A DNA stretch of 64,000 nt. Origin: Heterodontus francisci. Lineage: Eukaryota. Under the pieces are notes generated by a model. The model worked only from the letters and a program-made list of their open reading frames with translations. It was not told the origin of the DNA and ran no database searches. Made by a program: the position numbers and the translations under genes. Of the stretch, positions 6,424-38,291 are shown in pieces. The stretch covers positions 14,817,558 to 14,881,557 of the forward strand of contig NC_090399.1 of the NCBI RefSeq assembly GCF_036365525.1. Direction: 5' to 3'. Position 1 is the first letter of the stretch; every line of letters starts with the position of its first letter.

Positions 6424-6631
6424 CTGAATCTGAACTTGATCTGAAATATAAACAGATTGTGTTACACATTTACATAATGCAGACAAGGTAGAGTTTACAT
6501 TGCTTACTTTGTATTTCCTCCCCTCAAACCCTCCTTCCCTTCTGTTATGAGGGCACTGACATTGGCTGGGTGAAGTACTTGGGTTGCCTGATAGTAATAC
6601 TTCATCCAAGTGGGCATTTCATTATATATAG
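6424..6631 (-). CDS. Candidate cytoplasmic exon(s) of gene 1 (6508-6631 and micro-exon 6424-6440)
   Basis: 6508-6631: AAG acceptor, phase-1 frame AIYNEMPTWMKYYY..., GTAAGC donor. 6424-6440: tatttcag acceptor and GTAAGA donor. Both lie in a non-repeat island downstream of the TM exon. Confidence 0.35.
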
Positions 6632-6984
6632 CTTGTAAGCAGAAAGGTTCGAATTGTCCCATCAACATTCCCCTCACAGACCCCAGGCACCTACTGAGAA
6701 ATCTGAATTGCCAATCCATAATTTTTCCAAGTCAGGAATTACATCCGGAGCATTGTAGCAGGAGGAGGCCATTCACCCCTTCGAGCCTATTCCACCATTA
6801 CATTAAATCATGGCTGTTTTGTATCTTAACTCCACCCAACCACATTAGTTCCGTACACTTAATACCTTCGCCTAAAAGAAATCTACCCATCTCAGTTTTG
6901 AAATTTTCAATTGCCCCTCCCGAACCTCGGCTGCTTTTTCAGGGCAGACATTTCACCCTTTGTTTGAAAAAGGGATTCCTGTCA

Positions 6985-7330
6985 TTGCAAAACACTTTGG
7001 AATGTAGTCACTGTTGCAGGGTAGGGAACACAGCAACCAGTTTGTACTCAGCAAGATTTGAAAAACAGCACTCTGATCGATGGTGGTGCGATAGGCCAGA
7101 TAATCTGTTTTTGTGATGTTGACTGAGGGATAAATATTGGCCAGGACACTGGGGATAGCCCTGCTGCTTTCGGGCCATGGAATCCTTGAGAGGTCCTCAG
7201 TTTAACAGCTCACATGGAAGATGGCATCGTCAACAGTGCAGTACTGAGGGTATGCCAGCCTAGATTTTTGTGCTCAAATCCGTGAGAGCAGCAATGAACT
7301 TTGTGGCTCAAAGACGAGAATGCTGCTACA
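6985..7330 (-). mobile_element. Deu-domain SINE (SacSINE1/AmnSINE-like)
   Basis: Core GAGGGATAAATATTGGCCAGGACAC on + strand, shared with the copy at 18.1-18.6 kb. Confidence 0.6.
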
Positions 7331-7389
7331 CTTTCTGAGCTGTGCTGATTATCCACTATTAATTTGCATGGCGAGTTTCCCCTCATTTA

Positions 7390-7782
7390 GAACATAGAAC
7401 ATAGAACAGTACAGCACAGTACAGGCCCTTCGGCCCACGATGTTGTGCCGACCCTTTAATCTACTCTAAGATCAAACTACCTACATACCTTCATTCTACT
7501 ATCATCCATGTACCTATCCAAGAGTCGCTTAAATGTCCCTAATGTATCTGCTTCTACTACCACCACTAGCAGTGCATTCCACGCACCCACCACTCTCTGT
7601 GTAAAGAACCTACCTCTGACATCTCCCCTAAACCTTCCTCCAATCATCTTAAAATTATGCCTCCTGGTGATAGCCCTTTCCGCCCTGGGAAAAAGTCTCT
7701 GGCCATCCACTCTATCTATGCCTCTCATCATCTTGTACCCCTCTATCAAGTCACCTCTCATGCTTCTTCGCTCCAATGAGAA
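7390..7782 (-). mobile_element. CR1 3' end
   Basis: RGDLIE...FFTQRVVGAWNAL and a (TTCTATG)n tail. Confidence 0.85.
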
Positions 7783-8298
7783 ATTTACAGAGAACTATTT
7801 ATAGACTAGCCACTAAATGCCATTATGAAGCGCACGGTCGCACAAAAAATAAATTAATCAGAAAAAGCACCGCGTTCGACTTTCAGAAATGGGATTGTCT
7901 TAAATCCAAGTATTGTGCAGAAATAATTACCATATTGGTGGTCATCACTTATTGACAGTGCAACCGTATGAGACCTACAAGATAAGATCAAGTTAAATGT
8001 AATTATATATTGCTAAGTTGTAAATTCCAATTCGTACATAAATAATAATGCATTATTTTGGATACGTACCCTTTAAGCCTTCTTATAGCTAAATTAGAAG
8101 GAAACAGCATAAGATTATATAACTTTACAGGAGTTTTTTTTTAGTTTGCGTTTAACAGAGCAAATAACAGCTATTAATGTTTATGTAAATATTTATATAA
8201 ATAGCATAATCAGCGCCAAGCTTGCCCCCAAATCTGTAATTACAGACAAACATAAATGGTTCTCACAATTAACAGAAAGGCTACAATTACATTTGCAT

Positions 8299-8444
8299 TT
8301 AAACGGTACCTTTACGTTGATGATACAGCCGAGAGAGCAGGAGAATGATGACAACGGTGAACAGCCCCAGGAAAATTCTCAGCATTATTGGAAATATTCC
8401 ATCTTTAATTGAAACGCCCAGTGGAGGACAATCAGTTGCCTTCT
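8299..8444 (-). CDS. NCR3: NKp30/NCR3-like receptor gene 1, exon 3 (stalk + transmembrane with Arg)
   Basis: Acceptor ...tctaccag, phase 1; KATDCPPLGVSIKDGIFPIMLRIFLGLFTVVIILLLSRLYHQRKG. Either reads through to TAA at 8299-8301 or splices at AAG|GTACCG (exon end 8310). Confidence 0.8.
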
Positions 8445-8719
8445 CTGGTAGAAGACAACGAAGAGGGTTTATTTCACAACTCACTGTTTAGTCATTTATC
8501 TCACAAGCTGAAGCACCCATCAAAACTGGAATGGGGACCAAGAAGTAGAAGTCAAATGAGACATTCTTGGGGTAATTAGCAACAATACACTGTTAAATAT
8601 TGCAGCTGCTGCAAACTCAATACGACCATTAAACATTCGTGAGGAATAAACTTCATGAATCTAAGTTATCACCTGCCCCATGCAAATACTTCGGGTTTAG
8701 TAACACATAAACTGAGCTT

Positions 8720-10560
8720 CCTGACGGGGTGGTTACCGACCAGGAGGATATCGGTGAGGTTTTAAATGATTTCTTTTCATCTGTGTTCACGATGGAGAAG
8801 GACGATGTAGGTGTAGAGATCAGGGAGGGGGATTGTGATATCCTTGACCATATTAGCATTGAAAGGGAGGAGGTATTAGTGGTTTTAGGGGGGGGGCTTA
8901 AAAGTGGATGAATCCCCAGGCCCAGATGAGATGTATCCCAGGCTGTTATGTGAGGCAAGGGAGGAGATTGCAGGGGCTTTGACTCAAATTTTCAAATCCT
9001 CTCTGGCCACAGGAGAGGACTGGAGGACAGCAAATGTGGTACCATTATTCAAGAAGGGTAGTAGGGATAAACCAGGTAATTACAGGCTGGTGAGTCTAGC
9101 ATCAGTGGTAGGGAAACTATTGGAAACTATTCTGAGGGACAGGATTAATTTCCACTTGGAGAGGCCGGGATTAATCAAGGATAGTCAGCATAGCTTTGTC
9201 ATGGGGGAGGTCATGTCTAACATTTGATTGAAGGTTTCGAGGATGTGACTAGGTGTGTAGATGAGGGTAAAGCAGTAGATACATGGACTTCAGTAAGGCT
9301 TTTGATAAGATCCCACATGGGAGATTGGCCAAGAAGGTAAGAGCCCTTAGGATCCAGGGCAATTTGGCAAATTGGATCCAAAATTGGCTTAGTGGCAGGA
9401 AACAGAGGGTGATGCTCGAGGGCTGTTTTTGCAATTGGAATCCTGTGACCAGTGGTGTACCGCAGGGATCGGTGCTGGGACCCTTGGGTTTGTAGTGTGG
9501 CAACCAGAACTGTACAGTCATCCAGCTGTAGCCTAACCAGCGTTTTATACAGTTCCATAATAACCTCCCTGCTCTTATATTCTATGCCTCAGTTAATGAA
9601 GGAAAGTTTTTAGACGTGAATATAGGAGGTGTGATCAGTAAGTTCGCAGATGATATGAAAATTGGTGGTGTCGTAAATAGTGAAGAGGAAAGCCTTAGAT
9701 TACAGGACAATATGGATGGGCTGGTAAGATGGGCAGAGCAGTGGCAAATGGAATTTAATCCTGAGTAGTGTGAGGCAATGCATTTTGGGAGGACTAATAA
9801 GGCAATGGAATATACAATGGATGGTAGGACCCTAGGAACTACAGAGGGTCAGAGGGACCTTGTCCATAGATCACTGAAGGCAGCAGCACAGGTAGGTAAG
9901 GTGGTTAGGAAGGCATATGGGATACTTGACTTTATTAGCGGAGGCATAGAATATAAGAGCAGGGGGGTTATTATGGAGATGTATAAAATGCTGGTTAGGC
10001 CACAGCTTTGTCTGTACTGTGTACAGTTCTGATTGCCACACTATAGGAAGGATGTGATTACACTGGAGAGGGTGCGGAGGAGATTCACCAGGATGTTGCC
10101 TTGGCTGGAGCATGACAGCTATGAAGAGAGACTGAATAGGCTAGGGTTGTTTTCCTTAGAGCAGAGAAGGCTGAGAGGGGACCTGATTGAGGTATATAAA
10201 ATTATGAGGGGCATAGATAGGGTAGATAGGAAGAAACTTTTCCCCTTAGCGGAGGGGTCAATAACCAAGGGGTATAGATGGAAGGTAAGGGGAAGGAGGT
10301 TTAGAGGGGATTTGTGGAAATAAAATTTCACCCAGAGGGAGTTGGAATTTGGAACACACTGCCTGAAGGGCTGGTAGAGGCAGGAACCCTCACAACATTT
10401 AAGAAGCATTTAGATGAGCAGTTGAAACGGCAGAGCATACAAGGCTACAGGCCAAGTGCTGGAAAATGGGATTAGAATAGATAGGCTTCATGGACAGTGC
10501 AGACATGATGGGCCAAAGGGCCTGTTTCTGTGCTGTATAACTCTATGACTCAATGACTCT
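8720..10560 (+). mobile_element. CR1 LINE, 5'-truncated, with an internal inverted segment; intron 2 of gene 1
   Basis: SPGPD, DFSKAFDK and [14 protein letters not shown] pieces plus the 3' UTR. Confidence 0.9.
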
Positions 10561-10562
10561 AT

Positions 10563-10885
10563 ATTGCCTCAAACTTTTCCCCTTCATGCATTCTACATTT
10601 TCTGTCTCTATCTGCGTGTGTGTTTATGGCATATGCATGCTGGCGTGGTTGTGTCACGTATTTGTAGCCATTACCCGAATTAGAGTTGAAGATTAATAAA
10701 CTTCCACCTTTCCTGTTTAAATCTAAGAAAATCTGTTTGATTTCTTTGCCTTAGGGGAGCAGTGAACAAGGATTCACTGAGGGGGAACTAAAAACACACT
10801 GTTTCTAAAATTAAACCCTGTTACGGTTAAACCAGGCAAAGGCTGGGAGGGAACCCCTAGACCCCTATCTCACCTGGTTGTAACA
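10563..10885 (+). mobile_element. Possible LTR 3' half
   Basis: Contains AATAAA and ends ...GGTTGTAACA; 5' part absent or overwritten by the CR1. Confidence 0.35.
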
Positions 10886-10945
10886 CTTACAAATGTCAAA
10901 ATAATTGGGCAATTCTTAAAAAGTACTCTGGTCTCTTCTACTTAC

Positions 10946-11284
10946 TGTCAATTACAATAAGTTGTGTTCCTTTCCCAGTTTCTACCCCAATCCCCTGAAT
11001 TTCCACCTCACAGTAGTAAAAGTCAGAGTCCATTTTCGTTAAATTGTGGATTTTGATAAAAATCATTTTTTGAGCAAATAAAGTTGGCCCGGACTTCACT
11101 ATCCGTCTCTGGTAGAAAGGATTCGAATCCGACATCTCCATGTTTTCTGAGGCCCGCCTCCAAACAACTCGGCCGACAGTTTGGTTCGCTTCAAAGGTGC
11201 AATTCAGCTGCATTGACCCTCCTTCTGTCACATTAATGGCGGCCGGAGACTGGAACACTTTGAGTTCGCCCTTCAACCCATTGA
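10946..11284 (-). CDS. NCR3: NKp30/NCR3-like receptor gene 1, exon 2 (Ig V domain)
   Basis: Acceptor ...tactgcag and donor GTAAGT, phase 1-1. LKVFQSP...LNC...VVW...DSDFYYCEVEIQGIGVETGKGTQLIV carries the V-set C-W-C and DxxxYxC motifs and resembles human NKp30 CRVEVLGLGVGTGNGTRLVV. Orthology is not tested. Confidence 0.88.
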
Positions 11285-11309
11285 CTGCAGTATAAATGGA
11301 ACAATATAA

Positions 11310-12080
11310 TCATAAGAAACAGGAGCAGGAGTAGGCCATTTGGCCCTTTGAGCATACTCTGCCATTCAATATGATCATGGCCAATCTACCACTTTCTCAC
11401 ACTCATATCACTTAATTCCCTTAGTATCCAAAAATCTATTGACCTTTATCTGGAATGTTCTCAGTGACTGAACATCTACAGCCTTCTGCGATAGAGAATT
11501 CCAAAGATTCACAACCCTCTGAGTAAGAAATTCACCTCCTGATTCCCCAAAGCCTCTTCACCCAGATACAAGATCCATGTTAGGATTGTGATGGAATACT
11601 GTTCACTTGCCTAGATAGGTGCAGCTTCAGCAATGCTCAAGATATGGATACCATCCAGGACAAAGCAACCCGCTTGATCAGCACCCCATCCACCACCTTA
11701 AATCTTCACTCCCTCCACCATTGGCACATACTTGCAGCATCTACAAGATGCACTGCATCAACTCACCAAGTCTTCTTCGACAGCACCTTCCAAACCCACG
11801 ACCTCTACCACCTAGAAGGACAAGGGCAGTAGATGCATGGCAACACCACCACCTGCAAGTTCCCCAAGTCACGCGCCCTCCTGACTTAGAACTATATCAC
11901 AGTTCCTTCACTGTTGCTTGGTCAGAATCCTGGAACACCCTTCCTAACAGCACTGTGGGTGTACCGACACCCCAAGGACTGCAGTGGTTTGAAAAGGCAG
12001 CTCACCACCACCTTCTCATGGGCAATAAATGCTGGTCTTGCCAAAGATGCCCACATCCCGAGACGGAGATAAAAAAAACA
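11310..12080. mobile_element. CR1 3' tail (-, 11310-11535) abutting a family B LINE 3' end (+, 11535-12080)
   Basis: GGAGCAGGAGTAGGCCATT tail motif; DTIQDKATRLI...HSLHH remnant. Confidence 0.75.
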
Positions 12081-13029
12081 GGATCTATGTACCTCAGTGT
12101 GAAGTATCAGAATCTGCCAATTAAGTGTGTAAAATTGATAAGAATTGATCCCAGACACATTGATCATTATGGGAAAGGATTTAATTTCTAAAAGGCACGG
12201 GTTAGAAGTTAAAAGTTAGGGGTAAGAAGGGAGGTTAGGGAGAAACTGTTCATCTAAAAAGTAACAGATTTGTGTAAGTAAGGGAGTGGGTAATACAAGT
12301 AGACTCTAGGGACGTCTATTGTGGGTTTGGTGAAGGAACTTTGATCTGTCAAAAAGGGACAGTTTTTTGTGGGGTGGTGGGGGGTGGTGGAGGAGCAGAT
12401 AATGATCGCTTATTACGTCCAGGCTCCTACAAATACATTAAAATACTGACAACCCGAAAGCAGCATTGAGCCATAAGCCATTTAACAAGCTTTTATAAAC
12501 AGTCATTAATTTGGGTCTTTTCCAGTTCCTAAACGCAACCTTTTGGAAATTGATGATCTCGGGAAAGCTGTTTCTCAAAATTTCCATTTTCCCTAGGACA
12601 ACTACATCTCTGATTTTTTTGGTTTGTTTTAATCTTATTGGTTTTCCATTTTAAAACCGGTTTTCCACACATTTCCCTCTGTGCATCACCGCTGTTCAAA
12701 TCAAGATTCATGCCCCGATGTTTATTACACCAACTTACTGATGACCACCAAACAGCGGAACTCCTCGAGGTATCAGCTAACCACTAATTCCCCAATTACT
12801 TCTTTCTCCTACTTGGGCGTGGTGGTTGGGATGGGATGGGATGGGAAGGGGACGGGAGAGGGACTGTACTCCTGCCATCTTTACCCATTTAACTGGAAAA
12901 CTTGTCCTTTCTATTTTGCAAAATGTAAGTATGGGAACGTTAGATGGATGTAGGTTCTGAACCCTCTGCCAATAGAACAATTTGTATCTACTGCAAAAGC
13001 TATGAATTATCAAGTAAATGTATAATATG

Positions 13030-13150
13030 TAAAATATACTTGATGAAAGGTAATCGATCTGAAACGTTGAAACTATTTCTCCACAGCGGTTGCCTGAGTT
13101 GCTGTGTATTTCCAGCATTTTCCGTTTTGAGCTCAGATTTCCAGATTCCC
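13030..13150 (+). mobile_element. Penelope-derived repeat with degenerate hammerhead
   Basis: TTGATGA...GAAACGTT followed by a degenerate copy of the 3' end seen at 52250-52350. Confidence 0.55.
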
Positions 13151-13652
13151 ATATATCACAGTCGGTTAGGAGTCCGGCAGTTAATTTACTTCCAGACCTA
13201 AATTCTACTGGGTCCCTTTAATTATATTAATCTGCAATGGAAGTCCAGGGCATTTTCTTGAAGGAGAATGTTTAATGTAAGCAACCTCTAACCCGGGTGC
13301 GACATCTGAAAGGTTGGTGGAAGCGGTTTGAATAAGGAATGGAATAAAGACCTGAAAAAGAAAACAGTTGCACGGCTGTGGGGAAAGAGTGGAAGAGTGA
13401 GAGTAATTGGATAGCTCTTTCAAAGAATAGAGACGCAACGACGGGCCGAATGGACTCCTATACTGTGTGTGTCTGTGATAAAGTTGGCCTTAAAGATAGT
13501 TGGATTCAGCACAGTATAGTAGAATGAAACAGATTGTCACACACTTACTTCATTTTGTTTTAGTTCTGCATAAGGAAACAGTCTGTCCAACCAAATATGT
13601 TAAAGTGTTCATGGATACAGAAATAAAATGTGATAATAAGACGGTGACTCAC

Positions 13653-13710
13653 CGGTATGTAGAATAATTACCATTAAATTCAATAACGTCCATATGTGAA
13701 CAGTTTGCAT
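13653..13710 (-). CDS. NCR3: NKp30/NCR3-like receptor gene 1, exon 1 (signal peptide)
   Basis: ATG at 13710; encodes MQTVHIWTLLNLMVIILHT plus one G base, then GTGAGT donor; 58 bp, phase 1; same length and NLM motif as the gene 2 leader. Confidence 0.8.
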
Positions 13711-14387
13711 CGTGATATTTGCTTTGCAGGACAACAGAAAACTCTCTTGCGTCTTGCAACCACCGAAAGTCACGTTAAACAGAACGAACATCCCATCGCA
13801 GGTGCTGACGTGTATGGAGGGGGAGAAAAAAAAACTTGAGGTGGTTTTAAACTTACCTTTTATTAATTTTCCAATTGTGGTGGGAAACAATATTTTAAGA
13901 ATAATTATGAAGGAACACTAATTGAGTATTACACAGGTATCACCGAATGCATTGAGGCAGAAGATTAACGGATTTAAAGTTCAGTTTAATCGTTCATAAA
14001 CTTCTACGGTGTGCAAACTTCAACGGAGATAGAAACTCGTGTTAAGTTTGTTCAGATAGCAATATGCACAGAATGATTGCTCAGTGTGAAGCCAAACTGA
14101 AAGGCAGAATTCCCATGGATTAGAACCAGGCAGAACTAACCTCCAGGGTTAACATTTACACCGCATTCACACAAGGGAACAAGAGCGTTGCAAAGATTTG
14201 TTTTCAGCAGATAGCTGGGCGTTATCCACAGTCGAGGGAACCAGCAAGGTTTGAAATATTAGAAGAGAAACTAAAGTAAAGTTAACGATTTGGAGACACG
14301 AGTCTTGGGATTTTAAAAGCTGCAGATTGCAGGATGGCGAGAAGACAGAGGAAGGTTATAAAGTTTCATAACTTTGAGTTCCTGCGA

Positions 14388-14885
14388 CATACTCTCCACT
14401 TGCCTGGATGGGTGCAGCTCCAACAACACTCAAGAAGCTCAACACCATCCAGGACAAAGCAGCCCACTTGATTGTCACCCCATCCACAAACATTCACTCC
14501 CTCCACCACCGACGCACAGTGGCAGCAGTGTGTACCATCTACCAGATGCACTGCAGCAACGCACCAAGGCTCCTTCAACAGCAACTTCCAAACTGTGACC
14601 TCTACCACCTAGAAGGACAAGGGCAGCAAATGCATGGGAACACCACCACCTGCAAGTTCCCCTCCCAGTCACACACCATCCTGACTTGGAATTATATCGC
14701 CACTGTCGCTGGGTCAAAATCCTGGAACTCCCTTCCTAACAGCACTGTGGGTGTACCTACCCCACATGGACTGCAGCGGTTCAAGAAGGCAGCTCACCAC
14801 CACCTTCTCAAGGGAAATTAGGAATGGGCAATAAATGCTGGCCTAGCCAGCGATGCCCACATCCCATGAATGAATAAAAAAAAAA
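14388..14885 (+). mobile_element. Family B LINE 3' end
   Basis: ORF GAAPTTLKKLNTIQDKAAHLI...SWNSLP; A-rich tail. Confidence 0.85.
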
Positions 14886-14959
14886 CATTTGACACGAGAG
14901 AAATATGATTTCAACAGAACAATAATCCAGAATAAGGGAGGCAGTGGTGCTCCATAATC

Positions 14960-15213
14960 TTCTGGTCAGATATTCTCTGTGACCCTCTGTCCTATCAACA
15001 CCTTCACTTGTGTTATCTCATGCCCCACCCCTGTTTTGTTTGCTTGAAACCTATTACATTTCTAACCTTTGCCAGTTCTGATGAAGGATCACCGACCTGA
15101 AACATTAACTCTGCTTCTCTCTCCACAGATGCTGCCAGACCTGCTGAGTATTTCCAGCATTTCTTGGTTATATTTCAGATTTCCAGCATCTGCAGTATTT
15201 TGCTTTTATATTA
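14960..15213 (+). mobile_element. Penelope-derived non-autonomous repeat with hammerhead ribozyme
   Basis: Homologous to 52110-52353; hammerhead at 15074-15110. Confidence 0.7.
15074..15110 (+). ncRNA. Minimal type I hammerhead ribozyme motif
   Basis: AGTT-CTGATGA-AGG(loop)CCT-GAAA-CATT-AACT: canonical core with paired stems I and II. Confidence 0.65.
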
Positions 15214-15216
15214 TAT

Positions 15217-15595
15217 TGTAGTGGTAATGTCACTGGTACAGGTAATCCAGAGCCCAGGGTAATCCTCTGTGGACACGGGTTCGAATCCCATGGGTTCAAT
15301 GGTGAAATTTGAATTCAATTAATAAATCTGGAATTAAAAAGCTAGTCCAATTATGACTACGAAATCATTGACAATTGTTGTAAAAACCTATTGGGTTCAT
15401 TAATGTTCTTTAGGGAAAGAAATCTGCCATCATTACCTGGCCTGCCCTATATGTAACTCCAGACCCACAGTAATGTGGTTGACTCTTAAAAAATGCCTTC
15501 TGAAAATGGCCTAGTAAGCCATTTCAAGGGCAGTTAGGGGTGGGCAATAAATGCTGGCCTGGCCAGTGATGCCCACATCCCACAAACAAATAAAA
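15217..15595 (+). mobile_element. tRNA-headed SINE with a family-B LINE-derived tail
   Basis: A-box-like GTAGTGGTAA, B-box GGTTCGAATCC; 3' ~70 nt match the family B LINE end. Confidence 0.6.
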
Positions 15596-15747
15596 ATAAG
15601 TTGATTGTGTTGGATGGCAAATTTGGAGTTCAGGGTGCATAAGGAAGGGAATTTCAGATGAGCAAAGGATGCGATGTAGAAATAACCAGAAACCAGAATT
15701 GTGGAATTCGTCACAAAGAGCCATAGAATCATAGTCATAGAGTTATA

Positions 15748-16805
15748 CAAAGAACAAAGAACAGTACAGCACAGGAACAGGCCATTCGGCCCTCCAAGCC
15801 TGCCCCGATCTTGATGCCCGCCTAAACTAACACCTTCTGCACTTCCGGGGCCCATATCCCTCTATTTCCTTCCTATTCATATATTTGTCAAGATGTCTCT
15901 TAAACATCACTATCATATCTGCTTCCACCACCTCCCCTGGCAGCAAGTTCCAGGCACTCACCACCCTCTGTGTAAAAAACTTGCCTCGCACATCCCCTCT
16001 AAACTTTGCCCCTCGCACCTTAAACCTATGTCCCCTAGTAACTGACTCTTCCACCCTGGGAAAAAGCTTCTGACTATCCACTCTGTCCATGGCGCTCATA
16101 ACTTTGTAAACCTCTATCATGTCGCCCCTCCACCTCCGTCGTTCCAGTGAAAACAATCTGGGTTTTTCCAACCTCTCCTCAATGCTAATGCCCTCCAGAC
16201 CAGGCAACATCCTGGTAAACCTCCTCTGTACCCTCTCCAAAGCCTCCACGTCCTTCAGGTAGTGTGGCGACCAGAATTGCACGCAATATTCTAAGTGTGG
16301 CCTAACTAAAGTTCTGTACAGCTGCAATATGACTTGTCAATTTTTATACTCTATGCCCTAACCGATGAAGGCAAGCATGCCGTATGCCTTCTTGACTACC
16401 TTATCCACCTGCGTTGCCACTTTCAGTGACCTGTGGACCTGTACGCCCAGATCTCTCTGCATGTCAATACTCCTAAGGGTTCTGTCATTTACTGTACACC
16501 TCCCACCTGCATTAAACCTTCCAAAATGCATTACCTCACATTTGTCCAGATTAAACTCCATCTGCCATTTCTCCGCCCAAGTCTCCAACCGATCTATATC
16601 CTGCTGTATCCTCTGACAATCCTCATCATTATCCGTAACTCCAACAACCTTTGTGTCGTCCGCAAACTTACTAATCAGACCAGCTACATTTTCCTCCAAA
16701 TCATTTATATATACTACAAACAGCAAAGGTCCCAGCACTGATCCCTGCGGAACACCACTAGTCACATCCCTCCATTCAGAAAAACACCCATCCACTGTTA
16801 CCCTC
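15748..16805 (-). mobile_element. Young CR1 3' portion nested in an older CR1 (15722-17465)
   Basis: Near-identical to about 62715-63770; (TTCTTTG)n tail; the host tail resumes at about 16805. Confidence 0.9.
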
Positions 16806-24380: not shown

Positions 24381-24769
24381 TGCAGCAGGGTGGGGGGAGG
24401 ACTTAGGAGCTGGAGGCTCCATGCCCCAATAAAGGTGCTGCCAATGTCAAAAGACCAAAACTTGTCCATTAAAGGGGGAATCCATCCAAAACAATGGCCC
24501 TACTCAGTCTAACATTTACAGAAGGCCAGGAGAGGGCATCCATGTTGAAGTGCTCTTGCGCCTACCTGCCTCAGCAGCGCCCCCTTTCCCAGTGGGGCTG
24601 ATGGCCGGACATCACTGCGGGCCTTCCAATTGGGCCTGCCACTTCCCTGGTCCGCCTGGGCTCCTGGAGGTGGCTTCTTAATTGGCCGCCTTCAGGAAGA
24701 TTGTGACTGATTCTCGCCATGGCTACTTCTGTTCCCGACCTGGAACTGAGGCTAACATCAGGATACGGA

Positions 24770-27304: not shown

Positions 27305-30011
27305 AACAAAGAACAAAGAACAGTACAGCACAGGAACAGGCCATTCGGCCCTCAAAGCCTGCGCTGATCTCGATGCCTACCTAAACTAAAACCTTCTGCA
27401 CTTCCGGGGACTGTATCCCTCTATTCCCAGCCTATTCATGTATTTGTCAAGATGCCTCTTAAACGTCGCTATCGACCTGCTTCCACCACCTCCCCCGGCA
27501 GCAAGTTCCAGGCACTCACCACCCTCTGTGTTTATCGTCACTGTTCCTGAAATGCTCCCCTACTGAAACTTCGACCGCCTGGCCGGGCTCATTCCTCAAT
27601 ACCAGGTCCAGTATGGCCCCATCCCTAGTTGGACTAGCTACATATTGTTTCAAGAAGCCCTCCTGGATGCTCCTTACAAATTCTGTCCCATCCAAGCCCC
27701 TAGCACTACGTGAGTCCCAGTCAATATTGGGGAAGTTAAAATCACCCACCACTACAACCCTGTTACCTTTACATCTTTCCAAAATCTGTCAACATATCTG
27801 CTCCTCTACCTCCCGCTGGCTGTTGGGAGGCCTGTAGAAAACCCCCAACATCGTGACTGCACCCTTCCTATTCCTGAGCTCCACCCATATTGCCTCGCTC
27901 CATGACCCCTCAGAGATGTCCTCCCGCAGTACAGCTGTGATATTCTCCTTAACCAGTAATGCAACTCCCCCACCCCTTTTACATCCCCCTCTATCCTGCC
28001 TGAAGCTTCTAAATCCTGGAACATTTAGCTGCCAATCCTGTCCTTCCCTCAACCAAGTCTCTGTAATAGCAACAACATCATATTTCCAAGTACTAATCCA
28101 AGCTCTAAGTTCATCTGCCTTACCTGTTATACTTCTCACATTGAAACAAATGCACTTCAGACCACCGGTCCCGCTGAGCTCAGCAACATCTCCCTGCCTG
28201 CTCTTCCTCTTAGTCTTACTGGCCTTATTTACTAGCTCCCCCTCATTTATTTCACTTGCTGTCCTACTGCTCTGGTTCCCACCCCCCTGCCACACTAGTT
28301 TAAACACTCAGGAGTGATGCGAGCAAACCTCGCAGCCAGGATATTTGTGCCCCTCCAGTTTAGATGCAACCCATCCTTCTTGTACAGGTCCCATCTGTCC
28401 CTGAAGAGATCCCAATGGTCCAGATATCTGAAACCCTCCCTTCTACACCAGCTGTTCAGCCACGTGTTTAGCTGCACTATCTTCCTATTTCTAGCCTCAC
28501 TGGCACGTGGCACAGGGAGTAATCCCGAGATTACAACCCTAGAGGTCCTGTCTTTTAACTATCTACCTAACTCCCTAAACTACCCCTGCAGGACCTTGTC
28601 ACTCTTCATGCCTATGTTGTTGGTATCGATGTGGACCACAACCTCTGGCTGTTCACCCTCCCCCTTCAGAATGCCCCCTGTCCGTTCAGAGACATTCTTG
28701 ACCCTGTCACCTGGGAGGCAACATACCATCCTGGAGTCTCTTTCACGTCCACAGAAGCGCCTATCTGTGCCCCTGACTATCGAGTCCCCTATAACTATTG
28801 CTCTTCTGCGCTTTGTCCCTCCCTGCTGAACAACAGTGCCAGCCATGTTGCCATTGCTCTGGCTGCTGCTGTTTTCCCCTGATAGGCCACCCCCCCCCAA
28901 CAGTATCCAAAATGGTATACTTGTCACAGAGGGGGATAGCCACAGGGGATTCCTGCACCGACTGCCTGCCCCTTCTAGCGGTCACCCATCTATCTGCCTG
29001 CAGCTTGGGTGTAACCACTTCTCTAAAACTCCTGTCTATGACGCTTTCCGCCACCTGCATGCTCCTAAGTGCATCCAGTTGTCGCTCCAACCGATCCATG
29101 CGGTCTGTGAGGAGCTGCAACTGGGTACACTTCCTGCAGATGTAGTCCTCCGGAACGCTGGAAGCGTCACGGACTTCCCACATCTCACAGGTGAAGCACT
29201 TCACCCCTCTAACTGACATTTCTAGCACTATTTATTAAATTAATTTAAAATAAATAAATACTTATTAAATCCTTACTAAATTGTTATAATTAACTATATG
29301 GTCCCCAGTGCTAGATTCCTACTATAAATATTAAATGCTAACTAAATACAGTAATCTCCCCTCTGGTTTAGTTACTCTACTAATTAGTTAATTAGGGTTT
29401 TAATCAATTTTTATCAATGTTTTCTTTTCAAATTCAGTAAAAATTCCCCACCAGCCAATCAGGTCACAGCTTTCCTGTGACATCACTTTCAGTTTTTTTT
29501 AACCAGAGGTAAGTTTTTTTATACTTACCGGTCTGGATCTCCGCCCCCCAAGTCTTCTCCCTGGATGAAGGCTACAAAACCCCGAGGTAAGTTTTTTATA
29601 CTTACCGGTCCGGAACTCCACCCTCCGAGTCTTCTCCCAGTCAGCTGTGCTCTTTGGAAGCTCTCGGCTCCCCTCACTCTGAGGACAGGTAGGAAATGAA
29701 AGGAGCTCCTCACCGAACTTCCTCAGTTACCAAACTTCCACTGTAGCACTCTAATGCAAACAAAGTCAGCACTGCAAGATAGCTCACTGTTATATTGACT
29801 GACTCTAGCCCCTGAAAACTGGTTTAAGCCAATTCTCTAATTAACAAGGTGCAGCTGCAAGCAGAGCCTGAGTGAACCCTGTTTCAAGCTGATCTAAAAC
29901 CCACCTTCTCCAACCCTAACAGCAACTGTTAAATTAATCTGCTCAATAAAAGACAGATTAGATTTAAGATAAAATTAACCCTTATTTATCCTCAGTTACC
30001 AAACTTCCACT
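27305..30011 (-). mobile_element. CR1 with 5' UTR and ORF1 (zinc finger + esterase), ORF2 internally deleted; nested in an older CR1 tail
   Basis: ORF1 CFTC...CRKC and IVIGDSIV (SGNH-type); EN ITETW and GDFNFP joined directly to the 3' end at about 27531; host resumes at 30012. Confidence 0.88.
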
Positions 30012-30390
30012 TTCTCATTACTTTACCAAAACCCTTCAATGATTTTAAACAATTCTATCAATTCTCCTGTTAACCTCCTCTGCTCCAGTCCGTAGGTATC
30101 GGAGTGAAGGCTATGGAGGCGCCAAATTACCCCTCCATGCTCCCGAGGAAGCCCTAAACACATGCCGTTCTTTTTCTCTGATACCTATACACCGATTGCA
30201 CACTTTCACTAATTCTTTCTACATCATAGAAAGGTTAATGGAGCGTAAATTGTGTTCACAGCATTATTTCGTGGGCCAAATTATTCTGAACGTGAACTTG
30301 TCTTGAATCAGCACCCACCTATTTAGACACAGTGTCAGGTAGATGGTACATTACTCAGGACGGAAATAGTGATGCTATGATTATATTTCG

Positions 30391-30423
30391 TTGCCATCTG
30401 GTGGCAGTAATTCGATACTGCAG
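30391..30423 (-). promoter_or_regulatory. CTCF-binding-like motif (reverse) with upstream module
   Basis: Minus strand TGCAGTATC-6nt-CTGCCACCAGATGGCAA: core plus the upstream TGCAG module at typical spacing, in non-repeat DNA between the two genes. Confidence 0.55.
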
Positions 30424-31956
30424 TACACACCGGCGTAGGAGACAGCAGTGTAGTTTATATACACTCCATAAAGGGCTCGCCAGTGGCAGATACTGGGCAC
30501 TATAAGTCCCCTCGTAACTCGGCAGTGCCTGTTGTTCATGCATTAACCCGGAGAAAATACGTTAGCAGGCTATTCAGCTCCAGAGAATATCGCATCCTGG
30601 GCTGATGCAGTTCTAATCCAATACACACAGGGGAGGGAAAAAAACATCCTAAGCAGGAACTCTATTGACTTAAAATTTACTTGAACTGGACTATATTGAA
30701 ATGGGCAATCATAAAACAAGACTGTTGTCATAAATCTGTCACCCAGAGCTGGGTGATATGATTCCTTTTTTAACTATGTGTTCCACAACGCGGAAAATTT
30801 AATCCTGCTGTTTAATGAAATATCAGATCTAATTTTTAAAAAAGTGTTCCACCAGCAGATATCCCGTGGCATTACTTAGTCTATAACAATAGGGGTGTGA
30901 TCAACAAAGCGTAACTAGGACAGTGTTACAGGAAATGAATATGAAACTTACAGAAAGTGAGAACTATTTGGAACACTTTTAATATATTATAACTATAACT
31001 TGTAGCAGAAACAATGAACAAAATTGCTCCAATCACAAAGGCAGAGCGTGTAAATACCTTTTCACAGTATGTGAACGTACATTCGCAAAATAGTCACTGG
31101 CATAATCTCGCAGCATTTATTGCAATGTCAATATTATGGTGCGAATCTCTTTCAGCATGTTAGCTCGGTACATCAGACCGTTTCTTCCACCGATCCTGTA
31201 ACATCCATTTCATCATGCAAGGGACCACACTCATTTAAAACTCCACATAAATATTTCCCGAGGGAGTCGACAAAAGCCCTGGAAGACCTGTTCAATTCAA
31301 CTTCCCAACAATGTAACCTGGGCTGTCACCGCCCACAAATAGCATCCGATATCATTTCCAAATCAGCTAGAAACCATATTTCTTCATTCATTTTCTTTTT
31401 AACAGGTAATTTTTTTGCAGGTAATTCGCCAATGTTCTTGTTAGGTGTAGCGGCATGTGGAAAATAATTTTACAAAATTCGAATTTTATACATAGTTACT
31501 TTGAAAGGTCTCTGTCTCGTTTGATGACTTTGAAGCATAGCCTAGCATATTCCCAAGGTTTGGACTCACAAAATAAAACAGCCACGTTATTTGTAGAATG
31601 CATTTTGATTCCTATTTTGAAGATATTAAAAGACAGTATGAGCTTTTTTTTTCCTGTCAATACCCTATCTCGACAGTAAGCACACTAAAAATGTTAAAGA
31701 TCAAATAAAACCCCAAAGTAGCAATATCTCTGTGCAGCAAATAACAAGAGTGTTAACAGACCAATTCGGCAACATTTCATTTCAGCTTCTTCAAACGTTA
31801 ATCAAAACATGAGTCAGAACATGTTATTTTAAAAAATAAGCTCTTAAGCAAATACAAACATTCATCTTTGGACAAAGTCTGAATTTACGATGTAAAGGCA
31901 ACATTAGCAGGACTTCCGTGACGGAATGAATCCTTTATTCCAAATGAACTTTCATT

Positions 31957-32049
31957 TCACTGTTCTTCATGGCTCATCAAACTTCTCATGCAGACTTCGG
32001 AAGTGACAGATTTCGCCGTCGGATCTTCAGAGCAATCACGAGTCTTCGG
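31957..32049 (-). CDS. NCR3/CD28-like Ig receptor gene 2, exon 4 (cytoplasmic tail)
   Basis: Acceptor ...cgtctgcag; phase-0 open frame PKTRDCSEDPTAKSVTSEVCMRSLMSHEEQ*; AATAAA on the minus strand at 31934-31939. Confidence 0.55.
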   Translation of the reverse strand, partial: PKTRDCSEDPTAKSVTSEVCMRSLMSHEEQ

Positions 32050-32699
32050 CTGCAGACGTGTAAAATGATATTAACAATTCATACGGTCAATGCTGTCAAT
32101 CTGTCTCAACCCAAAATGTCGATATTAACGTACGAACGCTTAAGGCTTTAACAAGGTATTAACACAGATATTAACCTATCTATTTCGCATCACTAGAATG
32201 GAGCAGAAATGACTGAATGTGAACGTGCCTATTCTTGTTTTGAGTTAATGCAAAAGCGAGAAGGTTGTTGGATTTTCCAGTTTGAACTTTCAGAAGTTTT
32301 GGGGAGTGAGGATGGGGAGAAGGATCGAAAGTACAAGAAAGATAGTCAAATAATGTATTAAATTACAAGCACTGCAATGCATGGAAGAAGAGACGGTGCG
32401 AGCCGTCAAGCACATTCCTTCCAATGGGCCATGGATAACTTGGAATGTTATTGCCTCTTCGGAACTCATGGCAGAAGGGCCAGCTGCCAATTGTGGGGCA
32501 ATGAGACAGAGCGATATCCGCAGAGGTCAGCAAAACGGGTATTACTGAGGCCTCGAGCTCTCTTTAGTTGCGCAGAGCAACAAATACTGACCCTGGTATA
32601 ACTTGGCTTTCCCACTAGTTTTTGTCTGTATAGGTTTAAGTCAGAGTGCAGTTCACCTGCAGCACTGATGATAACAGCCTCATATTAAAAACCGGATAG

Positions 32700-33870
32700 C
32701 AAATTAACTGTGACGGGGCCTCAACTACTCACTGTCTTCATTCATGACTTAAACGATTGGATAGAAAGTCACATATCCAAATGTGCCGCTGACACAAAGA
32801 TAGGCGGCATTGTAAGGAGTGTAGATGGAGACATAATTACAAATTAATGGGCAAATCTGTGGTAAATGGATTTCAATGTAGACAAAAGTGAGGTCATCCA
32901 CTTTGGAACTAGAAAAGATAGACAGAATAATAAATAATCACAGAATTGTTACAGTTCCAAAGGAACTAGAAACAGCAAAGATCCAAAAGCACTTGTGGTC
33001 CAGATACACACATAATTAAAATGTCATGAACAGGTACATAAAATAATCAAAAAGGTTAATGGAATGCTTTATATCTGGAGCACGAGAACACAAGGGGGCA
33101 GAAGTCCTGCTTCTGATGTACAAATCCCTGGTCAGACCACACGTGGAGTATTGAGAGTAGTTCTGGGCAGTACACCTTAGGAAGGATATATTAGCCTTGG
33201 AGGGAGTGCAGCATTGGTTTACCAGAATGATAACTGGACTCCAAAGGTTAAATTATGCGGAAAGATTACACAAACCATGGTTATAGTCCATGGAATATAA
33301 AGGGTTAAGGGGTGATTTGATTGAATTGTTCAAGATATTAAGGGGAATAGAGGGCCTTGAGTCTTTGGAATTCTCTTCCTCAAAAGGCGGTGGAAGCAGA
33401 GTCTTTGAATATTTATAAGGCAGAGATAGATAGATTCTTGATAAGCAAGGGGGTGAAGGGTTATCGGGAGTAGGTGGGAATGTGGAGTTGAGGTTACAAA
33501 CAGTTGAGCCATGATCTTACTGAATGGCGGAGTAGACTCAAAGGGCTGAGTGGTCTACTCCTGCTCCTAATTCGTATGCTCATATGTATGTATAGATAGG
33601 GTAGATTGGGAGAAATTATTTTTGCTCGCTAGGGAGTAGAGGGAACTGTCAAAACATTAGAACCAGACCTTTCAGGAGTGAGATTAGAAAACACTTCTTC
33701 ACGCCAAGGGTAGAAGTTTGGAAACTTTCTTCTGCAAACGCAATTGATGCTCGATCAACTGTTAATTTGGGGGCAAAGGCGGGTTTGTAGAGTTAGATCG
33801 CAGATCAACCATGACCTCTTGAATGGTGGAACAGGCTTGAGGGGCTAAATGGCCTCTTCCTGTTCCTATG
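32700..33870 (+). mobile_element. Degenerate CR1 with a nested CR1 tail (33350-33590); intron 3 of gene 2
   Basis: Nucleotide similarity to the RT and 3' ends of other CR1 copies in the window. Confidence 0.7.
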
Positions 33871-33976
33871 GTCAATGCCGAACATTACTTTTCCCAATTT
33901 TATTAATTGATATTCCTTGAACAAACTCTACGCACATTATAGTTACGATATAAAGAATGAAGAAGCGAGTCAATAC

Positions 33977-34089
33977 CTTTACAAGGCATGCCACAACGCC
34001 GAAGAGAATTAGGAAGACGATGAGAATGCATTTTCCTACCAGAAGCCCAGTGACTGGAGGCGAAAGCAATTCACTTCCACAAGGCTGAC
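33977..34089 (-). CDS. NCR3/CD28-like Ig receptor gene 2, exon 3 (stalk + transmembrane with Lys)
   Basis: Acceptor ...cttttag, phase 1; RQPCGSELLSPPVTGLLVGKCILIVFLILFGVVACLVK, then AAG|GTATTG donor (phase 0). Confidence 0.75.
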
Positions 34090-34439
34090 CTAAAAGAAGA
34101 GGGCACTGAAGTGGGTGTCATTAAGGATGAACGTGAACGAAGCCTGGGCAAAATTCAGCAATACAACCTCAACACATTTCCCTTTATATTCATTCATTGT
34201 CAGAACTGAATGCTTGCTATGATGAAGTAATAACTTGCTGAATTCTGTAGCATTTCATCAACTGCCCGCAGACCCGTTTTCTTTAAAGTTGATAGAAACA
34301 TTATCAACAACAGTAAACCATACATTTTTTCCATTTGATTCTTGCTCATTAAGGTGAGGGATCTTTGGAATGCAATGCCTTTCTACTCATGGTACCTAGT
34401 ACCTGTTTTCCCAAATCAAAAGGAGGATAAAAGTGAGAT

Positions 34440-34758
34440 TTTATTTATTTATTGATACAGCACTGAAACAGGCCCTTTGGCCCACCGAGTATGTGCCGAC
34501 CAAGAACCACCCATTTATACTAACCCTACAGTAACCCCATATTCCCTACCACCTACCTACACTAGGAGCAATTTTACAATGGCCAATTTACCTATCACCT
34601 GCAAGTCTCTGGCGGTGGGAGGAAACCGGAGCACCCGGCGAAGACCCACGCGGTCACAGGGAGAACTTGCAAACTCTGCACAGGCAGTACCCAGAGTTGA
34701 ACCCGGGTCCCTGGAGCTGTGAGGCTGCGGTGCTAACCACTGCGCCACTGTGCCGCCC
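34440..34758 (-). mobile_element. Full-length HE1-like V-SINE
   Basis: tRNA head GGGCGGCACAGTGGCGCAGTGGTTAGCAC...GGGTTCAACT, V-core, CR1-type tail, (TAAA)n end. Confidence 0.85.
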
Positions 34759-35314
34759 ACTGTGCTGTGAACACAGCAAAATCAGGCCGCTCCATTTTAC
34801 ACCCATTGGTTTAAATATGGAGTGGGCTCCCCCAGCAACATGCACTCCACTCCGTCCAAATTTTCAGCATTCTCATTAACTCAGGCTTGTCAATAGCCCA
34901 GGCACAGGTCGGGACAATCTATGAAGCTTTCTTTGAACTGATTCAATGGCACAGTATAATTCTAAATACAAAAGGACCACCCTATTGTGTTTTGTTTTCA
35001 GTCGCTATTTGGTTTTCCTTTAGGCAGATTCAGCTCAATTGGGAAACATTGCAAGCTGTATTGCGTTTCAAACTTCAGCCCGCCACCAACAAAGTGGACA
35101 CGTTTGGGACGACACTTGACAAGGAGGAAAGACAACACGACCCATTGATCTTCTGAAATCAGCTTCAGTTCTGAGGGGTGAAGGGCTCTCCTCATTCACC
35201 TGCCTTGGCAGCGAATGATAAAGAAATTTATGTTTCTTGTTCTGCTTTACAGGGAGCTCTGTGCTACTTCCAATTCTTCCATCTTTTCTGCTTACCATCA
35301 AGAGGCAGTTAACG

Positions 35315-35785
35315 AAAGGAACAGGAGCAGGAGTAGGCCATTTGGCCCCTCGAGCCTGCTCCATCATTTAATAAGATCATGGCTGATCTGACTGTGGCCT
35401 TAACTCCACTTTCCCACCTTTCCCCCCATAACCCTTGACTCCCTTGAAGATCAAAAATCTAACTCGGCCTTGAATCTTTTAAATGATCCAGCCTCCACTG
35501 CTCTCTGGGGAAGAGAATTCCAAAGATTAATGATCCTCTGAGAGAAGAAATTCCTCCTCATTTCCATCTTAAATGGGAGACCCTTTATTTTTAAACTATG
35601 CCCCTAGTTCTACATTCCCCCACAAGGGAAAACATCCTCTCAGCATCTACCCTGTCAGTCAAGCCCCCGCAAAATCATATATGTTTCAATAAGATGACCT
35701 TTCATTCTTCTAAACTCCAATGAGTATAGGCCCAACATGCTCAAGCTTTCCTCACAAGACAGCCCCTTCATCCCAGGAACCAGGT
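35315..35785 (-). mobile_element. CR1 3' end
   Basis: Same tail family as 22840 and 41350. Confidence 0.85.
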
Positions 35786-35972
35786 TCAATAATAAATTTA
35801 ATTATACTTGTTAAATATAAATGTCATTAGTGAATTAATCCAAATCTGACTTCATCAGTTGATTGCAAGCCAATGCTTTTTTTGAACGAAAAATTCCTTT
35901 CCTCTTTAGAAATCTATGCAATTCGGGATCAAGTGCTCGTTCTGCAAACACCTCAGTCCATTTGCTGCTTAC

Positions 35973-36317
35973 GTTTTACATGAACTTTCGTGCCGTTCCC
36001 TATGCGGAGTTCCCCATCCATTGCTTTCACCACGCAGTAATAGGTGTCAGAATCGTGCAGTCTGAGGTCAGAGATTTTGATGAAAATTTTCCTTTCAATG
36101 AAGTGATGGGGTTTAGACTTCTCCAGGCGGTTTATAAGCAGCAGGTCGCTTTCCAAATCTGTGGCCTTTTCTCTCGATGCGCCACGTGTCCAGGAGACTT
36201 GGCTTACAGGCATCTCGGCCATCCCCTCTCCATAGGCACAGTACATTGTCACCGAGTCTCCTTCTGTTGCATCGACCGACTGAGGGGACTGCAATACATT
36301 AACCCATGATCGACAGG
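35973..36317 (-). CDS. NCR3/CD28-like Ig receptor gene 2, exon 2 (Ig V domain)
   Basis: Acceptor ...ttattccag and donor GTAAGC, phase 1-1; VNVLQSP...TMYC...VSW...DSDTYYC...GNGTKVHVK; shares IFIKI and DSDxYYC with gene 1. Confidence 0.88.
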
Positions 36318-38233
36318 CTGGAATAAAAAGAATCCAACTCTTAGAAGGCATAAAGGGCAATTTTCACCTAAACTGGTCGTTGGGAAACTGACGGGATCCA
36401 TGCAATGCTGGTTGTACGCTTACTCTCTATTGAAGTGTCATATAGGGCATAGTGTAAAATCATGGGTGTTCCCACCCTCTAGTTTCCATTAAGATTGCCA
36501 ATCGCCTAAAATTGTCTTGCCCCAAACTTAAACTTGCCCCAAACTGCACTTATGGTTTGCAAGTTGAGTGGGTATATTAACTCTTCATCCAGTTAGATTT
36601 CTTTCTTGATGACCAATTGTCCCAATGTATTTTTTGTTTATATTTTGTCATATTGGCAGACTAATTATGTATTCATGTTCCATCAGAATCACGGTTATGT
36701 ATGGACCCAGTCAGAGGAATTGCACTGAGAGTTTACAGGGAACAAAAACATACATTTATTTTTAAAGAACAAGTTCATGATTTCATTACAATACCACGTT
36801 TTTCTCGTCCACATGAATTCAGGATTTAATAAAATTAAAACTTGGTAAAAATGTGACCCAAGCAGGTAAGATAGAGTCAGTCATTATGGCACAGGAGGAA
36901 GACCATTTGGCCCATCTCTGTAGAGCAATCCAGTCAGTCCCATTCCTCTGCTCTATCCCTGTAGTCCTGTAAGTTCATTTCCCTCAAGTGCCCATCCAAT
37001 TTCCTTTTGAAATCATTGATAGTCTCTGCTTCCACCACCCTCCTAAGCAGTGAGTTCCAGGTCATTACCACTCACCACGTAAAAACGTTCTTCATCATAT
37101 TCCTCCCCCCCTGTATCTGTTGCCCAAAATCTTAAATTTGTGTCCTCCTAGCCCTTGTACCATCAGCTAATGGGAACAGCCTTTTTTTTGTCTACCTTAT
37201 CTAAATCTGTAAATGGAAGAACTTTTTAGAATAGTGCAATTACACCAGCTGCTATCATGCAATGAGACTCCTTTGGCAGCACCTTCCAAACACGTTATCT
37301 CTACTGCCTAGAAAAACAAGGGCCTCAGGAGCATGGGAACACCACCACCGCCAAGTTCTCCACCAATCACGCTGTGTCTGGGACAAAATCCCAGATTTCC
37401 TTCCCTATATCACATGGACGCCGTCGTTCAAGAAATGGCTCACCACCACCTTCTCAAAGGCAGTTAGGGATAAGCTATAAATGCTGGCCTAGCCAGTGAT
37501 GCTCACATCTCATGAATTAATTAAAAAAAAGATAGTGTAGCTATCACTAAATATGTTAAATAATGTAACACTATCTTGTTAGAAGCCATACATTAACTTT
37601 CAGTTATGCAAAACATCCAACTCAATGAACAACCCTTATTTTGATTGCAGTATTTGAGATTTCAACAGCGTTTACATTTTACTCCAGACCGTGAATGTCT
37701 AGACTTTCAAACTGACCTTATAAATGACAGTAAGATGCCTACATTATCATTTTTTGATTCACTCATGAGATGTGAGCCGTATTGTCAATTCTTATTCTAA
37801 ATTATACAAGGGGACGGAAGACCGCTGTCAGACATGGCACGGCTCAATCTGGGAGACAAACACAGGTCTAAAATTCAGTGAACTGTAAAACTCTTGCTCA
37901 ATGCAGAAAGTGCATTGTTATTTCCCACTACTGTTACTGCACTGTAGTAAAGATTAGAAGGGGATGATAATTAACATCTCTATGGAAAAAATGTGCCGTC
38001 TAAATAATTATTAAGCCATTAAAATTTAAAATAATTTCTCACTCATAATGAACGGATATTTGTAAGCGTTGTTGAACCAGTATCTTCCTGGAGGCAGTTT
38101 CTGGATCGTGTGAACCTGTGAACCAACCAACTTTTAACTCCTCACGTAAACTAGCACTAATTCTGGAAGAGGGGACAAAATAACGAGACCAAGAGAATTA
38201 AGGAACACGTGATAGTGATGAAACTGAACTTAC

Positions 38234-38291
38234 CTTTCGATAGAATCAGGAGCATTAAATTGACGCCGATGATTTTATTGAGTGCAGGCAT
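38234..38291 (-). CDS. NCR3/CD28-like Ig receptor gene 2, exon 1 (signal peptide)
   Basis: ATG at 38291; MPALNKIIGVNLMLLILSK plus one G base, then GTAAGT donor; 58 bp, phase 1. Confidence 0.8.

Follow-up and report, generated by a model that had tools for sequence, protein, structure and literature searches.

What kind of receptor is encoded by a pair of genes that lie side by side on one strand of shark DNA and that have been taken for a mixture of NKp30 and CD28? The pair lies in a 64-kb window of the genome of the horn shark, Heterodontus francisci (by window we mean the whole stretch of DNA analyzed), as two NCR3-like genes on the minus strand. These genes, here called gene 1 and gene 2, are arranged head to tail with about 17 kb between them. 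An earlier note on this DNA had described them as activating receptors that combine NKp30 and CD28 traits. Judged by their sequences, they are real neighboring genes of the NKp30 (NCR3) family, already present in public catalogues, and they are not CD28 hybrids. Our fuller reading, to which we assign a probability of roughly 0.7, is that they are old, diverged NCR3-family paralogues, of which gene 1 is most likely inhibitory and gene 2 most likely an activating receptor that depends on an adaptor, and that both are probably disulfide-linked dimers.

The abstract of Kinlein et al. 2021 (Immunogenetics 73:333) reportedly describes eight divergent nurse shark NCR3 subtypes linked to the major histocompatibility complex (MHC), and reportedly calls NKp30 the one natural-killer receptor that can be traced from sharks to humans. 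Two papers cite NKp30 as a VJ-domain gene that does not rearrange, is linked to the MHC, and is relevant to the origin of antigen receptors (PMC10751288, PMC12227049), and the latter gives the nurse shark NCR3 genes as accessions MT914154-914161. The horn shark pair adds two further members to this large and diverse shark NCR3 family, which is already in print and in RefSeq, and the overall picture is unchanged.

Two neighboring genes of the NCR3 family

The two genes share a common plan. Each has a 58-nt leader exon, one exon for a variable (V) domain of the VJ type, and an exon for the stalk and transmembrane (TM) segment, and in each the V-set domain comes from a single exon with a germline-joined, J-like GxGT (GKGT in gene 1, GNGT in gene 2). 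This matching architecture on one strand had been claimed before, and it is borne out both by the sequence and by the RefSeq models. RefSeq names both models "NCR3-like," and the exon borders are those of its proteins P0153 and P0003 (gene 1) and P0081 (gene 2), the database proteins that we used for full-length comparisons. Human NCR3 is built from leader, V, stalk/TM, and tail exons. Gene 2 follows the same plan with exactly four exons, and in gene 1 the leader, V, and stalk/TM exons are followed by four or more small tail exons. Introns are in phase 1 at the borders of the leader, V, and stalk/TM exons of both genes, except at the end of the gene 2 TM exon, which is in phase 0. Both V exons pass the Pfam V-set model (E values of 1.9e-10 for gene 1 and 1.2e-10 for gene 2); for either gene, Pfam reports general immunoglobulin (Ig) families and nothing narrower.

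Within this plan, the strong divergence claimed for the V domains also holds; the two proteins are 33% identical over 171 residues, with leaders that are alike. The nearly identical ectodomains that mark paired activating and inhibitory receptors are thus not found here; instead, each V lineage is conserved separately. Both proteins have a stalk Cys (in TDCPP in gene 1, in QPCGS in gene 2). In gene 1 this Cys precedes a TM Arg by 17 residues, and in gene 2 it precedes a TM Lys by 16. These positions stand as they had been described, and the word "unpaired" is to be qualified in one case, that of horn shark gene 2, which has one extra, non-conserved Cys beside the likely signal-peptide cleavage site.

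Gene 2 is expressed. We aligned contigs of four out of five listed sequencing runs, their kind being uncertain at the outset, to positions 32400-38399 of the window, and in three of the runs spliced contigs match gene 2 on the minus strand, in separate pieces and with no mismatch. The contigs of runs X1 (1699 letters) and X2 (997 letters) span both joints, with pieces running from 38399 or 38351 to 38234, from 36317 to 35971, and from 34087 to 33977; that of run X3 (625 letters) spans the second joint only (36220-35971 and 34087-33977). The joints 38234|36317 and 35973|34089 fit, the two-letter ambiguity at the second being a shared GT. Since their contigs are spliced, these three runs are RNA, and the first three exons of gene 2 are joined exactly as had been predicted. 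All three contigs exit the match exactly at 33977 and continue for 999, 421, and 264 further letters. The fourth run, from another organism and another study, yielded a single 201-letter contig on the gene 2 V exon, with two mismatches. Depths were given per contig and are uninformative on expression level.

The family assignment is most direct for gene 1. In a search of the PDB, the best match of its V exon was human NKp30 (3noi; E value of 3.1e-10), followed by SIRP-alpha (1e-6), and a profile of the gene 1 lineage placed four NKp30 entries on top (2-4e-12), again followed by SIRP-alpha (1e-8). The full protein P0153 aligns with possum NCR3 (P0089) over 191 residues (E value of 2e-23), from the V domain into the TM segment, where FPIMLR lies over FPLFLR with Arg on Arg, and on into the juxtamembrane stretch. 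Conversely, when possum NCR3 was the query against 168 stored proteins, P0153 was the best among the rows named as shark. By these alignments, gene 1 belongs to the NKp30-proper lineage.

Gene 2 is tied to the family through sharks. Its best non-orthologous relative in the collected set is the nurse shark protein QTT61901.1 (P0034), which its authors named NCR3, with 40% identity over 149 residues (91 bits). A maximum-likelihood tree was built from 24 V domains (25 rows were chosen, and P0097, with no recognizable VJ motif, was dropped), and in it the gene 2 clade has support of 100/99. The starred set of 17 rows in this tree comprises both lineages together with nurse shark NCR3, the NCR3-like proteins of Polypterus and Acipenser, and two turtle proteins; all rows came from searches seeded with gene 1 or gene 2. 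Thus, the closest relatives of both genes are NCR3 proteins, for gene 1 via human and possum NKp30 and for gene 2 only via shark NCR3, and the NKp30-family membership that had been proposed for both is supported. The suggestion that gene 2 might be an undescribed family member does not hold, as RefSeq already names gene 2 and its orthologues NCR3-like. Look-alikes of gene 2 in the ESM Atlas, useful as leads only, are generic single-V receptors, the first structural row being an NCR3-like cluster. A reading of the gene 2 V domain as antibody-light-chain-like, prompted by the light chains at the head of its PDB lists, was considered and rejected, the PDB lists drawing on thousands of antibody chains versus four NKp30 entries.

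Conserved motifs and probable signaling

Orthologues of gene 2 were found in Cetorhinus, Carcharodon, Scyliorhinus torazame (two), S. canicula, and Mustelus asterias, with 59-73% identity to P0081. The stalk Cys and the TM Lys, at a spacing of 16, are kept in all seven proteins of the lineage (the six aligned ones and a fused Mustelus model), and so is the short tail. Neither an immunoreceptor tyrosine-based inhibitory motif (ITIM) nor YxxM occurs in six of the seven; the seventh is the fused model, in which the read-through stretch scores as an ITIM. For gene 1, orthologues come from Heptranchias, S. canicula, Stegostoma, Cetorhinus (a fragment), and Chiloscyllium (V domain only), and the sawfish Pristis has a gene 1-like V domain. 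Every gene 1 protein that includes the stalk has the stalk Cys (5/5), and its distance to the TM position is 17 residues in the three orthologues measured. All four full-length gene 1 tails contain YS[T/N][I/V]. In the horn shark the cytoplasmic tail has about 80 residues, and its LEYSTI fits the strict ITIM pattern.

A basic residue in the outer part of the TM segment, which in NKp30 serves the pairing with an adaptor, is distributed unevenly: gene 2 has its Lys throughout (7/7), and an Arg at the mammalian position is present in one of five gene 1 proteins, that of the horn shark, with Gly, Gly, Gly or Ala/Leu in the other four. The horn shark codon is AGA, and a change between Arg and Gly takes one base. 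The Arg may have been kept or regained, the two histories being equally parsimonious.

How might these receptors signal? It had been claimed that both are activating. For gene 2 this agrees with the TM Lys and with a short tail that is free of ITIM and YxxM outside the Mustelus run-on; for gene 1 it does not stand, given the long tail with a tyrosine motif and the rarity of the Arg. Because this tyrosine motif is conserved in a tail of about 80 residues, gene 1 is most likely inhibitory. It would bind a ligand, possibly a B7H6 homologue, and its own tail tyrosine would carry the signal. Horn shark gene 1, with its Arg at the NKp30 position, could also pair with an adaptor, and the receptor might then have a dual function. 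KIR2DL4 is a known receptor in which an ITIM tail accompanies a basic TM residue, and horn shark gene 1 likewise has a TM Arg and an ITIM-type motif; however, KIR2DL4 belongs to an unrelated family, and among sharks only the horn shark (one of the five orthologues) unites the two traits. Gene 2 would also bind a ligand with its V domain, and its TM Lys would pair with an adaptor that has an acidic TM residue and an immunoreceptor tyrosine-based activation motif (ITAM).

Comparison with known NCR3 proteins places these traits in context. Mammalian NKp30 (the human ectodomain in 3noi, 3pv6, 6yjp, and 9fww; possum P0089) is like gene 1 in its single VJ-type V domain, its GxGT, and the position of its TM Arg. 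It is unlike shark gene 1 in lacking the stalk Cys and in having a short tail only, and its Arg is missing in four of the five shark gene 1 orthologues. Since the NKp30-proper lineage of sharks has a stalk Cys and a long tail with a tyrosine motif, the purely activating, short-tailed mammalian form may be derived. In the collected set, no non-orthologous protein is closer to either gene than the nurse shark protein P0034 (91 and 95 bits), which has a juxtamembrane motif in common with gene 1 and the F-G strand region in common with gene 2. It differs from both in lacking the stalk Cys and any TM charge, and it ends in a classic ITIM.

A protein model of Mustelus asterias, P0156 (337 aa), consists of a complete gene 2 orthologue that runs into the leader and V domain of a gene 1 orthologue. 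Either read-through or a mis-merged annotation probably accounts for it, and the fusion indicates that, in a carcharhiniform shark, gene 2 likewise lies directly upstream of gene 1 on the same strand. The order with gene 2 upstream is thereby found in at least two shark orders. In addition, both lineages share one contig in S. canicula and in Cetorhinus. The gene 2 lineage was seen in three galeomorph orders only and the gene 1 lineage also in Hexanchiformes and Orectolobiformes, in searches limited by shared words, such that absence is unproven. A separate Lys-TM lineage adjoins the NKp30-proper gene in at least two orders. What may be new here is limited to details, namely a conserved lineage with a TM Lys that lies immediately upstream of an NKp30-proper gene, the stalk Cys, and an Arg that occupies the mammalian TM position in the horn shark only.

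Several observations weigh against this reading of the pair as two NCR3 paralogues with opposite signaling. When the gene 2 V exon was compared with human PDB entries, NKp30 scored 26 bits, below antibody light chains, SIRP-alpha, and TCR-alpha at 29-34 bits; for this single gene 2 sequence, 26 bits lies at the lower end of the 60 best matches (25.9-54.6 bits). NKp30 was not among the best 60 PDB matches of the gene 2 lineage profile. The family tree contained no Ig, T-cell receptor (TCR), or CD28 sequences. The gene 1 tail is known from RefSeq models alone, with its last exon outside the window, and the RNA evidence covers gene 2 only. That evidence comes from three runs of one sample, of unspecified tissue, in one study. 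The "inhibitory" label for gene 1 is not secure, since a strict ITIM occurs in only two of the four full-length tails, at different tyrosines. Finally, the extra Cys near the signal-peptide cut of horn shark gene 2 could engage the stalk Cys.

Dimers and the CD28 question

A single stalk Cys that is conserved in both lineages suggests covalent dimers. In our reading, both receptors would probably be disulfide-linked, with homodimers as the default guess. The competing account that fares best, although we consider it unlikely, holds that the stalk Cys makes no receptor dimer at all, being free, modified, or bonded elsewhere, and that the proteins are monomers like mammalian NKp30. Possum NCR3 has no stalk Cys, an intrachain bond could form between the two stalk cysteines that the bichir and sturgeon proteins have, and horn shark gene 2 has the extra N-terminal Cys, all of which would suit monomers. 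However, a Cys with no structural role would not be expected to persist singly and at fixed spacing in 7/7 gene 2 and 5/5 gene 1 proteins.

It is also tempting to see in the conserved tandem the two chains of one disulfide-linked, non-rearranging VJ/VJ heterodimer, joined through the stalk cysteines, in which the gene 1 chain would provide the tyrosine-motif tail and the gene 2 chain the Lys that recruits an ITAM adaptor. If true, this would be a germline-encoded two-chain receptor inside the shark NCR3 family. The same-strand tandem in the horn shark, the Mustelus model in which gene 2 is fused to gene 1, and the shared contigs of S. canicula and Cetorhinus are in keeping with it, as are the similar leaders and the similar, fixed distance from stalk Cys to TM position (16 in 7/7 gene 2 proteins, 17 in the three gene 1 proteins measured). 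Nevertheless, the proposal draws on gene position and sequence, and the narrower distribution of the gene 2 lineage, as far as the word-limited searches go, speaks against it. We regard the heterodimer as improbable, more so than monomers, and retain two separate, probably homodimeric, receptors as the preferred reading.

What, then, of CD28? PMC11599192 lists, for chondrichthyan CD28 and CTLA-4, a proline motif (P-[P/L]-P) in complementarity-determining region 3 (CDR3), a TM dimerization motif YxxxxT, and a tail of the YxxM/EYxNM type. The CDR3 proline motif is absent from all seven gene 2 and all five gene 1 lineage proteins. The YxxxxT motif is absent from the seven gene 2 proteins and from the three gene 1 proteins scored, and the other two gene 1 TM segments have no tyrosine. 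YxxM occurs in 0 of the 12 proteins of both lineages. Sequence searches point the same way: no CD28, CTLA-4, or ICOS chain was among the best 60 PDB matches of either V exon or either lineage profile. With the region from the G strand to the C terminus of P0081 and P0153 as the query and E values of up to 10 allowed, the PDB returned one and eight matches, respectively, all to unrelated proteins and none to CD28 or CTLA-4. PDB chains seldom contain TM segments, so that this search informs mainly on the hinge.

The remaining resemblance is the membrane-proximal hinge Cys. It is present in both lineages and also in the NCR3-like proteins of bichir and sturgeon, and it is thus not diagnostic for CD28. 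Polypterus senegalus P0066 and Acipenser ruthenus P0103 resemble gene 2 in that a Cys lies three residues past a V-ending KR, the TM segment has a basic residue, and the tail is very short; when gene 2 is aligned with the sturgeon protein, its stalk Cys falls on a Cys. They differ from gene 2 in a second stalk Cys, in having Arg in place of the TM Lys, and in a V domain that is only about 30% identical. Because the Cys occupies the same position in these fishes, it is better read as an old NCR3-family trait, and the simplest reading of the sequences is that it was lost in mammals. The proposed combination of NKp30 and CD28 traits accordingly shrinks, on the CD28 side, to this one Cys. That the genes are NKp30/CD28 hybrids, or relatives of CD28 and CTLA-4, as hinge motifs given in the earlier note might suggest, is very improbable: a hinge Cys soon after the G strand in both genes and the GxG that, in PMC11599192, ties some CD28-family members to a VJ-type domain set including NKp30 would favor it, but all three family motifs are missing from both lineages, the PDB matches of the stalk, TM, and tail are at chance level, Pfam sees general Ig families only, and the Cys is common to the bichir and sturgeon proteins.

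Exons, transcripts, and surroundings

The exons of both genes are listed in Table 1. Compared with the earlier note, both genes are longer. Gene 2, which had been given three exons, has a fourth, located by tblastn with a catshark orthologue. Gene 1 does not end at 6424; exons 4 to 6 add to its tail, and the final 48 residues, including LEYSTI, are encoded outside the window. Ten P0003 motifs were sought in the minus-strand translation of the window, in all three frames. The seven that come from these last 48 residues were all absent, which indicates that gene 1 continues beyond the window start.

Table 1. Exons of the two NCR3-family genes, in window positions
Feature	Positions	Strand	Description
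Gene 1 exon 1, coding	13653..13710	-	58-nt leader MQTVHIWTLLNLMVIILHT + 1 nt, phase 1; ATG at 13710; donor GTGAGT; contained in isoform X1, P0153
Gene 1 exon 2	10946..11284	-	Single VJ-type V-set exon, GKGT; 100% match to P0003
Gene 1 exon 3	8310..8444	-	Stalk KKATDCPP, TM FPIMLRIFLGLF..., tail start; ends in phase 1
Gene 1 exon 4	8070..8088	-	19-nt cytoplasmic mini-exon AIRRLKG; matches P0003/P0153
Gene 1 exon 5	7931..7974	-	44-nt cytoplasmic exon SHTVALSISDDHQY; from P0003/P0153
Gene 1 exon 6	6424..6440	-	17-nt cytoplasmic mini-exon DQVQIQ; from P0003/P0153
Gene 2 exon 1, coding	38234..38291	-	58-nt leader MPALNKIIGVNLMLLILSK + 1 nt, phase 1; donor GTAAGT; matches P0081
Gene 2 exon 2	35973..36317	-	Single VJ-type V-set exon, GNGT; 73% identity to basking shark orthologue
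Gene 2 exon 3	33977..34089	-	Stalk QPCGS, TM LLVGKCILIV...; ends in phase 0
Gene 2 exon 4, coding	31957..32049	-	30-residue tail without tyrosine + stop; acceptor CAG; equals P0081 C terminus

The RefSeq models for gene 1 are P0003 (XP_067865593.1), found at 100% identity in an exhaustive search with the V exon, and isoform X1, P0153, both on a 74.5-Mb contig. They differ at the start. In isoform X2 (P0003), the start is an internal ATG of a different frame, the leader exon is spliced from another donor within it (region 13653-13793, minus strand), and the N terminus, MDVIEFN, comes without a signal peptide; isoform X1 begins at an upstream in-frame ATG. The ATG at 13710 is the sole signal-peptide-like start of gene 1 and agrees with the orthologues, and the leader that it opens has a homologous counterpart in the zebra shark orthologue P0008.

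For gene 2, a profile search found P0081, a Heterodontus francisci protein named NCR3-like on the 74.5-Mb contig, which equals our exon model plus an upstream in-frame start. The transcript starts further upstream, past 38399. In the 3' untranslated region, an AATAAA lies at 31121-31116, about 930 nt further along, a position compatible with the roughly 1-kb run-on of the X1 contig, the contigs having been compared on 32400-38399 only.

The window has no N. A search with 162 stored proteins returned the exons of gene 1 and gene 2 and three weak matches in repeat-rich DNA, with no further Ig exon, and an Rfam scan of the whole window at the gathering score gave zero family matches. Outside the two genes, the open reading frames (ORFs) are those of retroelements only. 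An intact ORF of a long interspersed nuclear element (LINE), 928 residues long, occupies 60891-63677 on the plus strand and encodes an endonuclease and a reverse transcriptase (Pfam Exo_endo_phos, 1.7e-14; RVT_1, 2.7e-35), and degraded copies of elements resembling it fill the 17 kb that separate the genes. Two long ORFs, of 401 and 503 residues, lie at 49104-51836 on the plus strand; the 503-residue ORF has a weak RVT_1 match (8.9e-06, under the Pfam cut-off) and a Cys-rich C-terminal part, and this element may be of another kind than the LINEs.

Further related genes lie on the same 74.5-Mb contig. One encodes another Heterodontus francisci NCR3-like protein, P0067, with two ITIM-type motifs, and a second encodes P0051, named SIRP-beta-2-like, whose V domain is VJ-type and related. 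Their presence on the same chromosome as gene 1 and gene 2 is consistent with a large receptor cluster.

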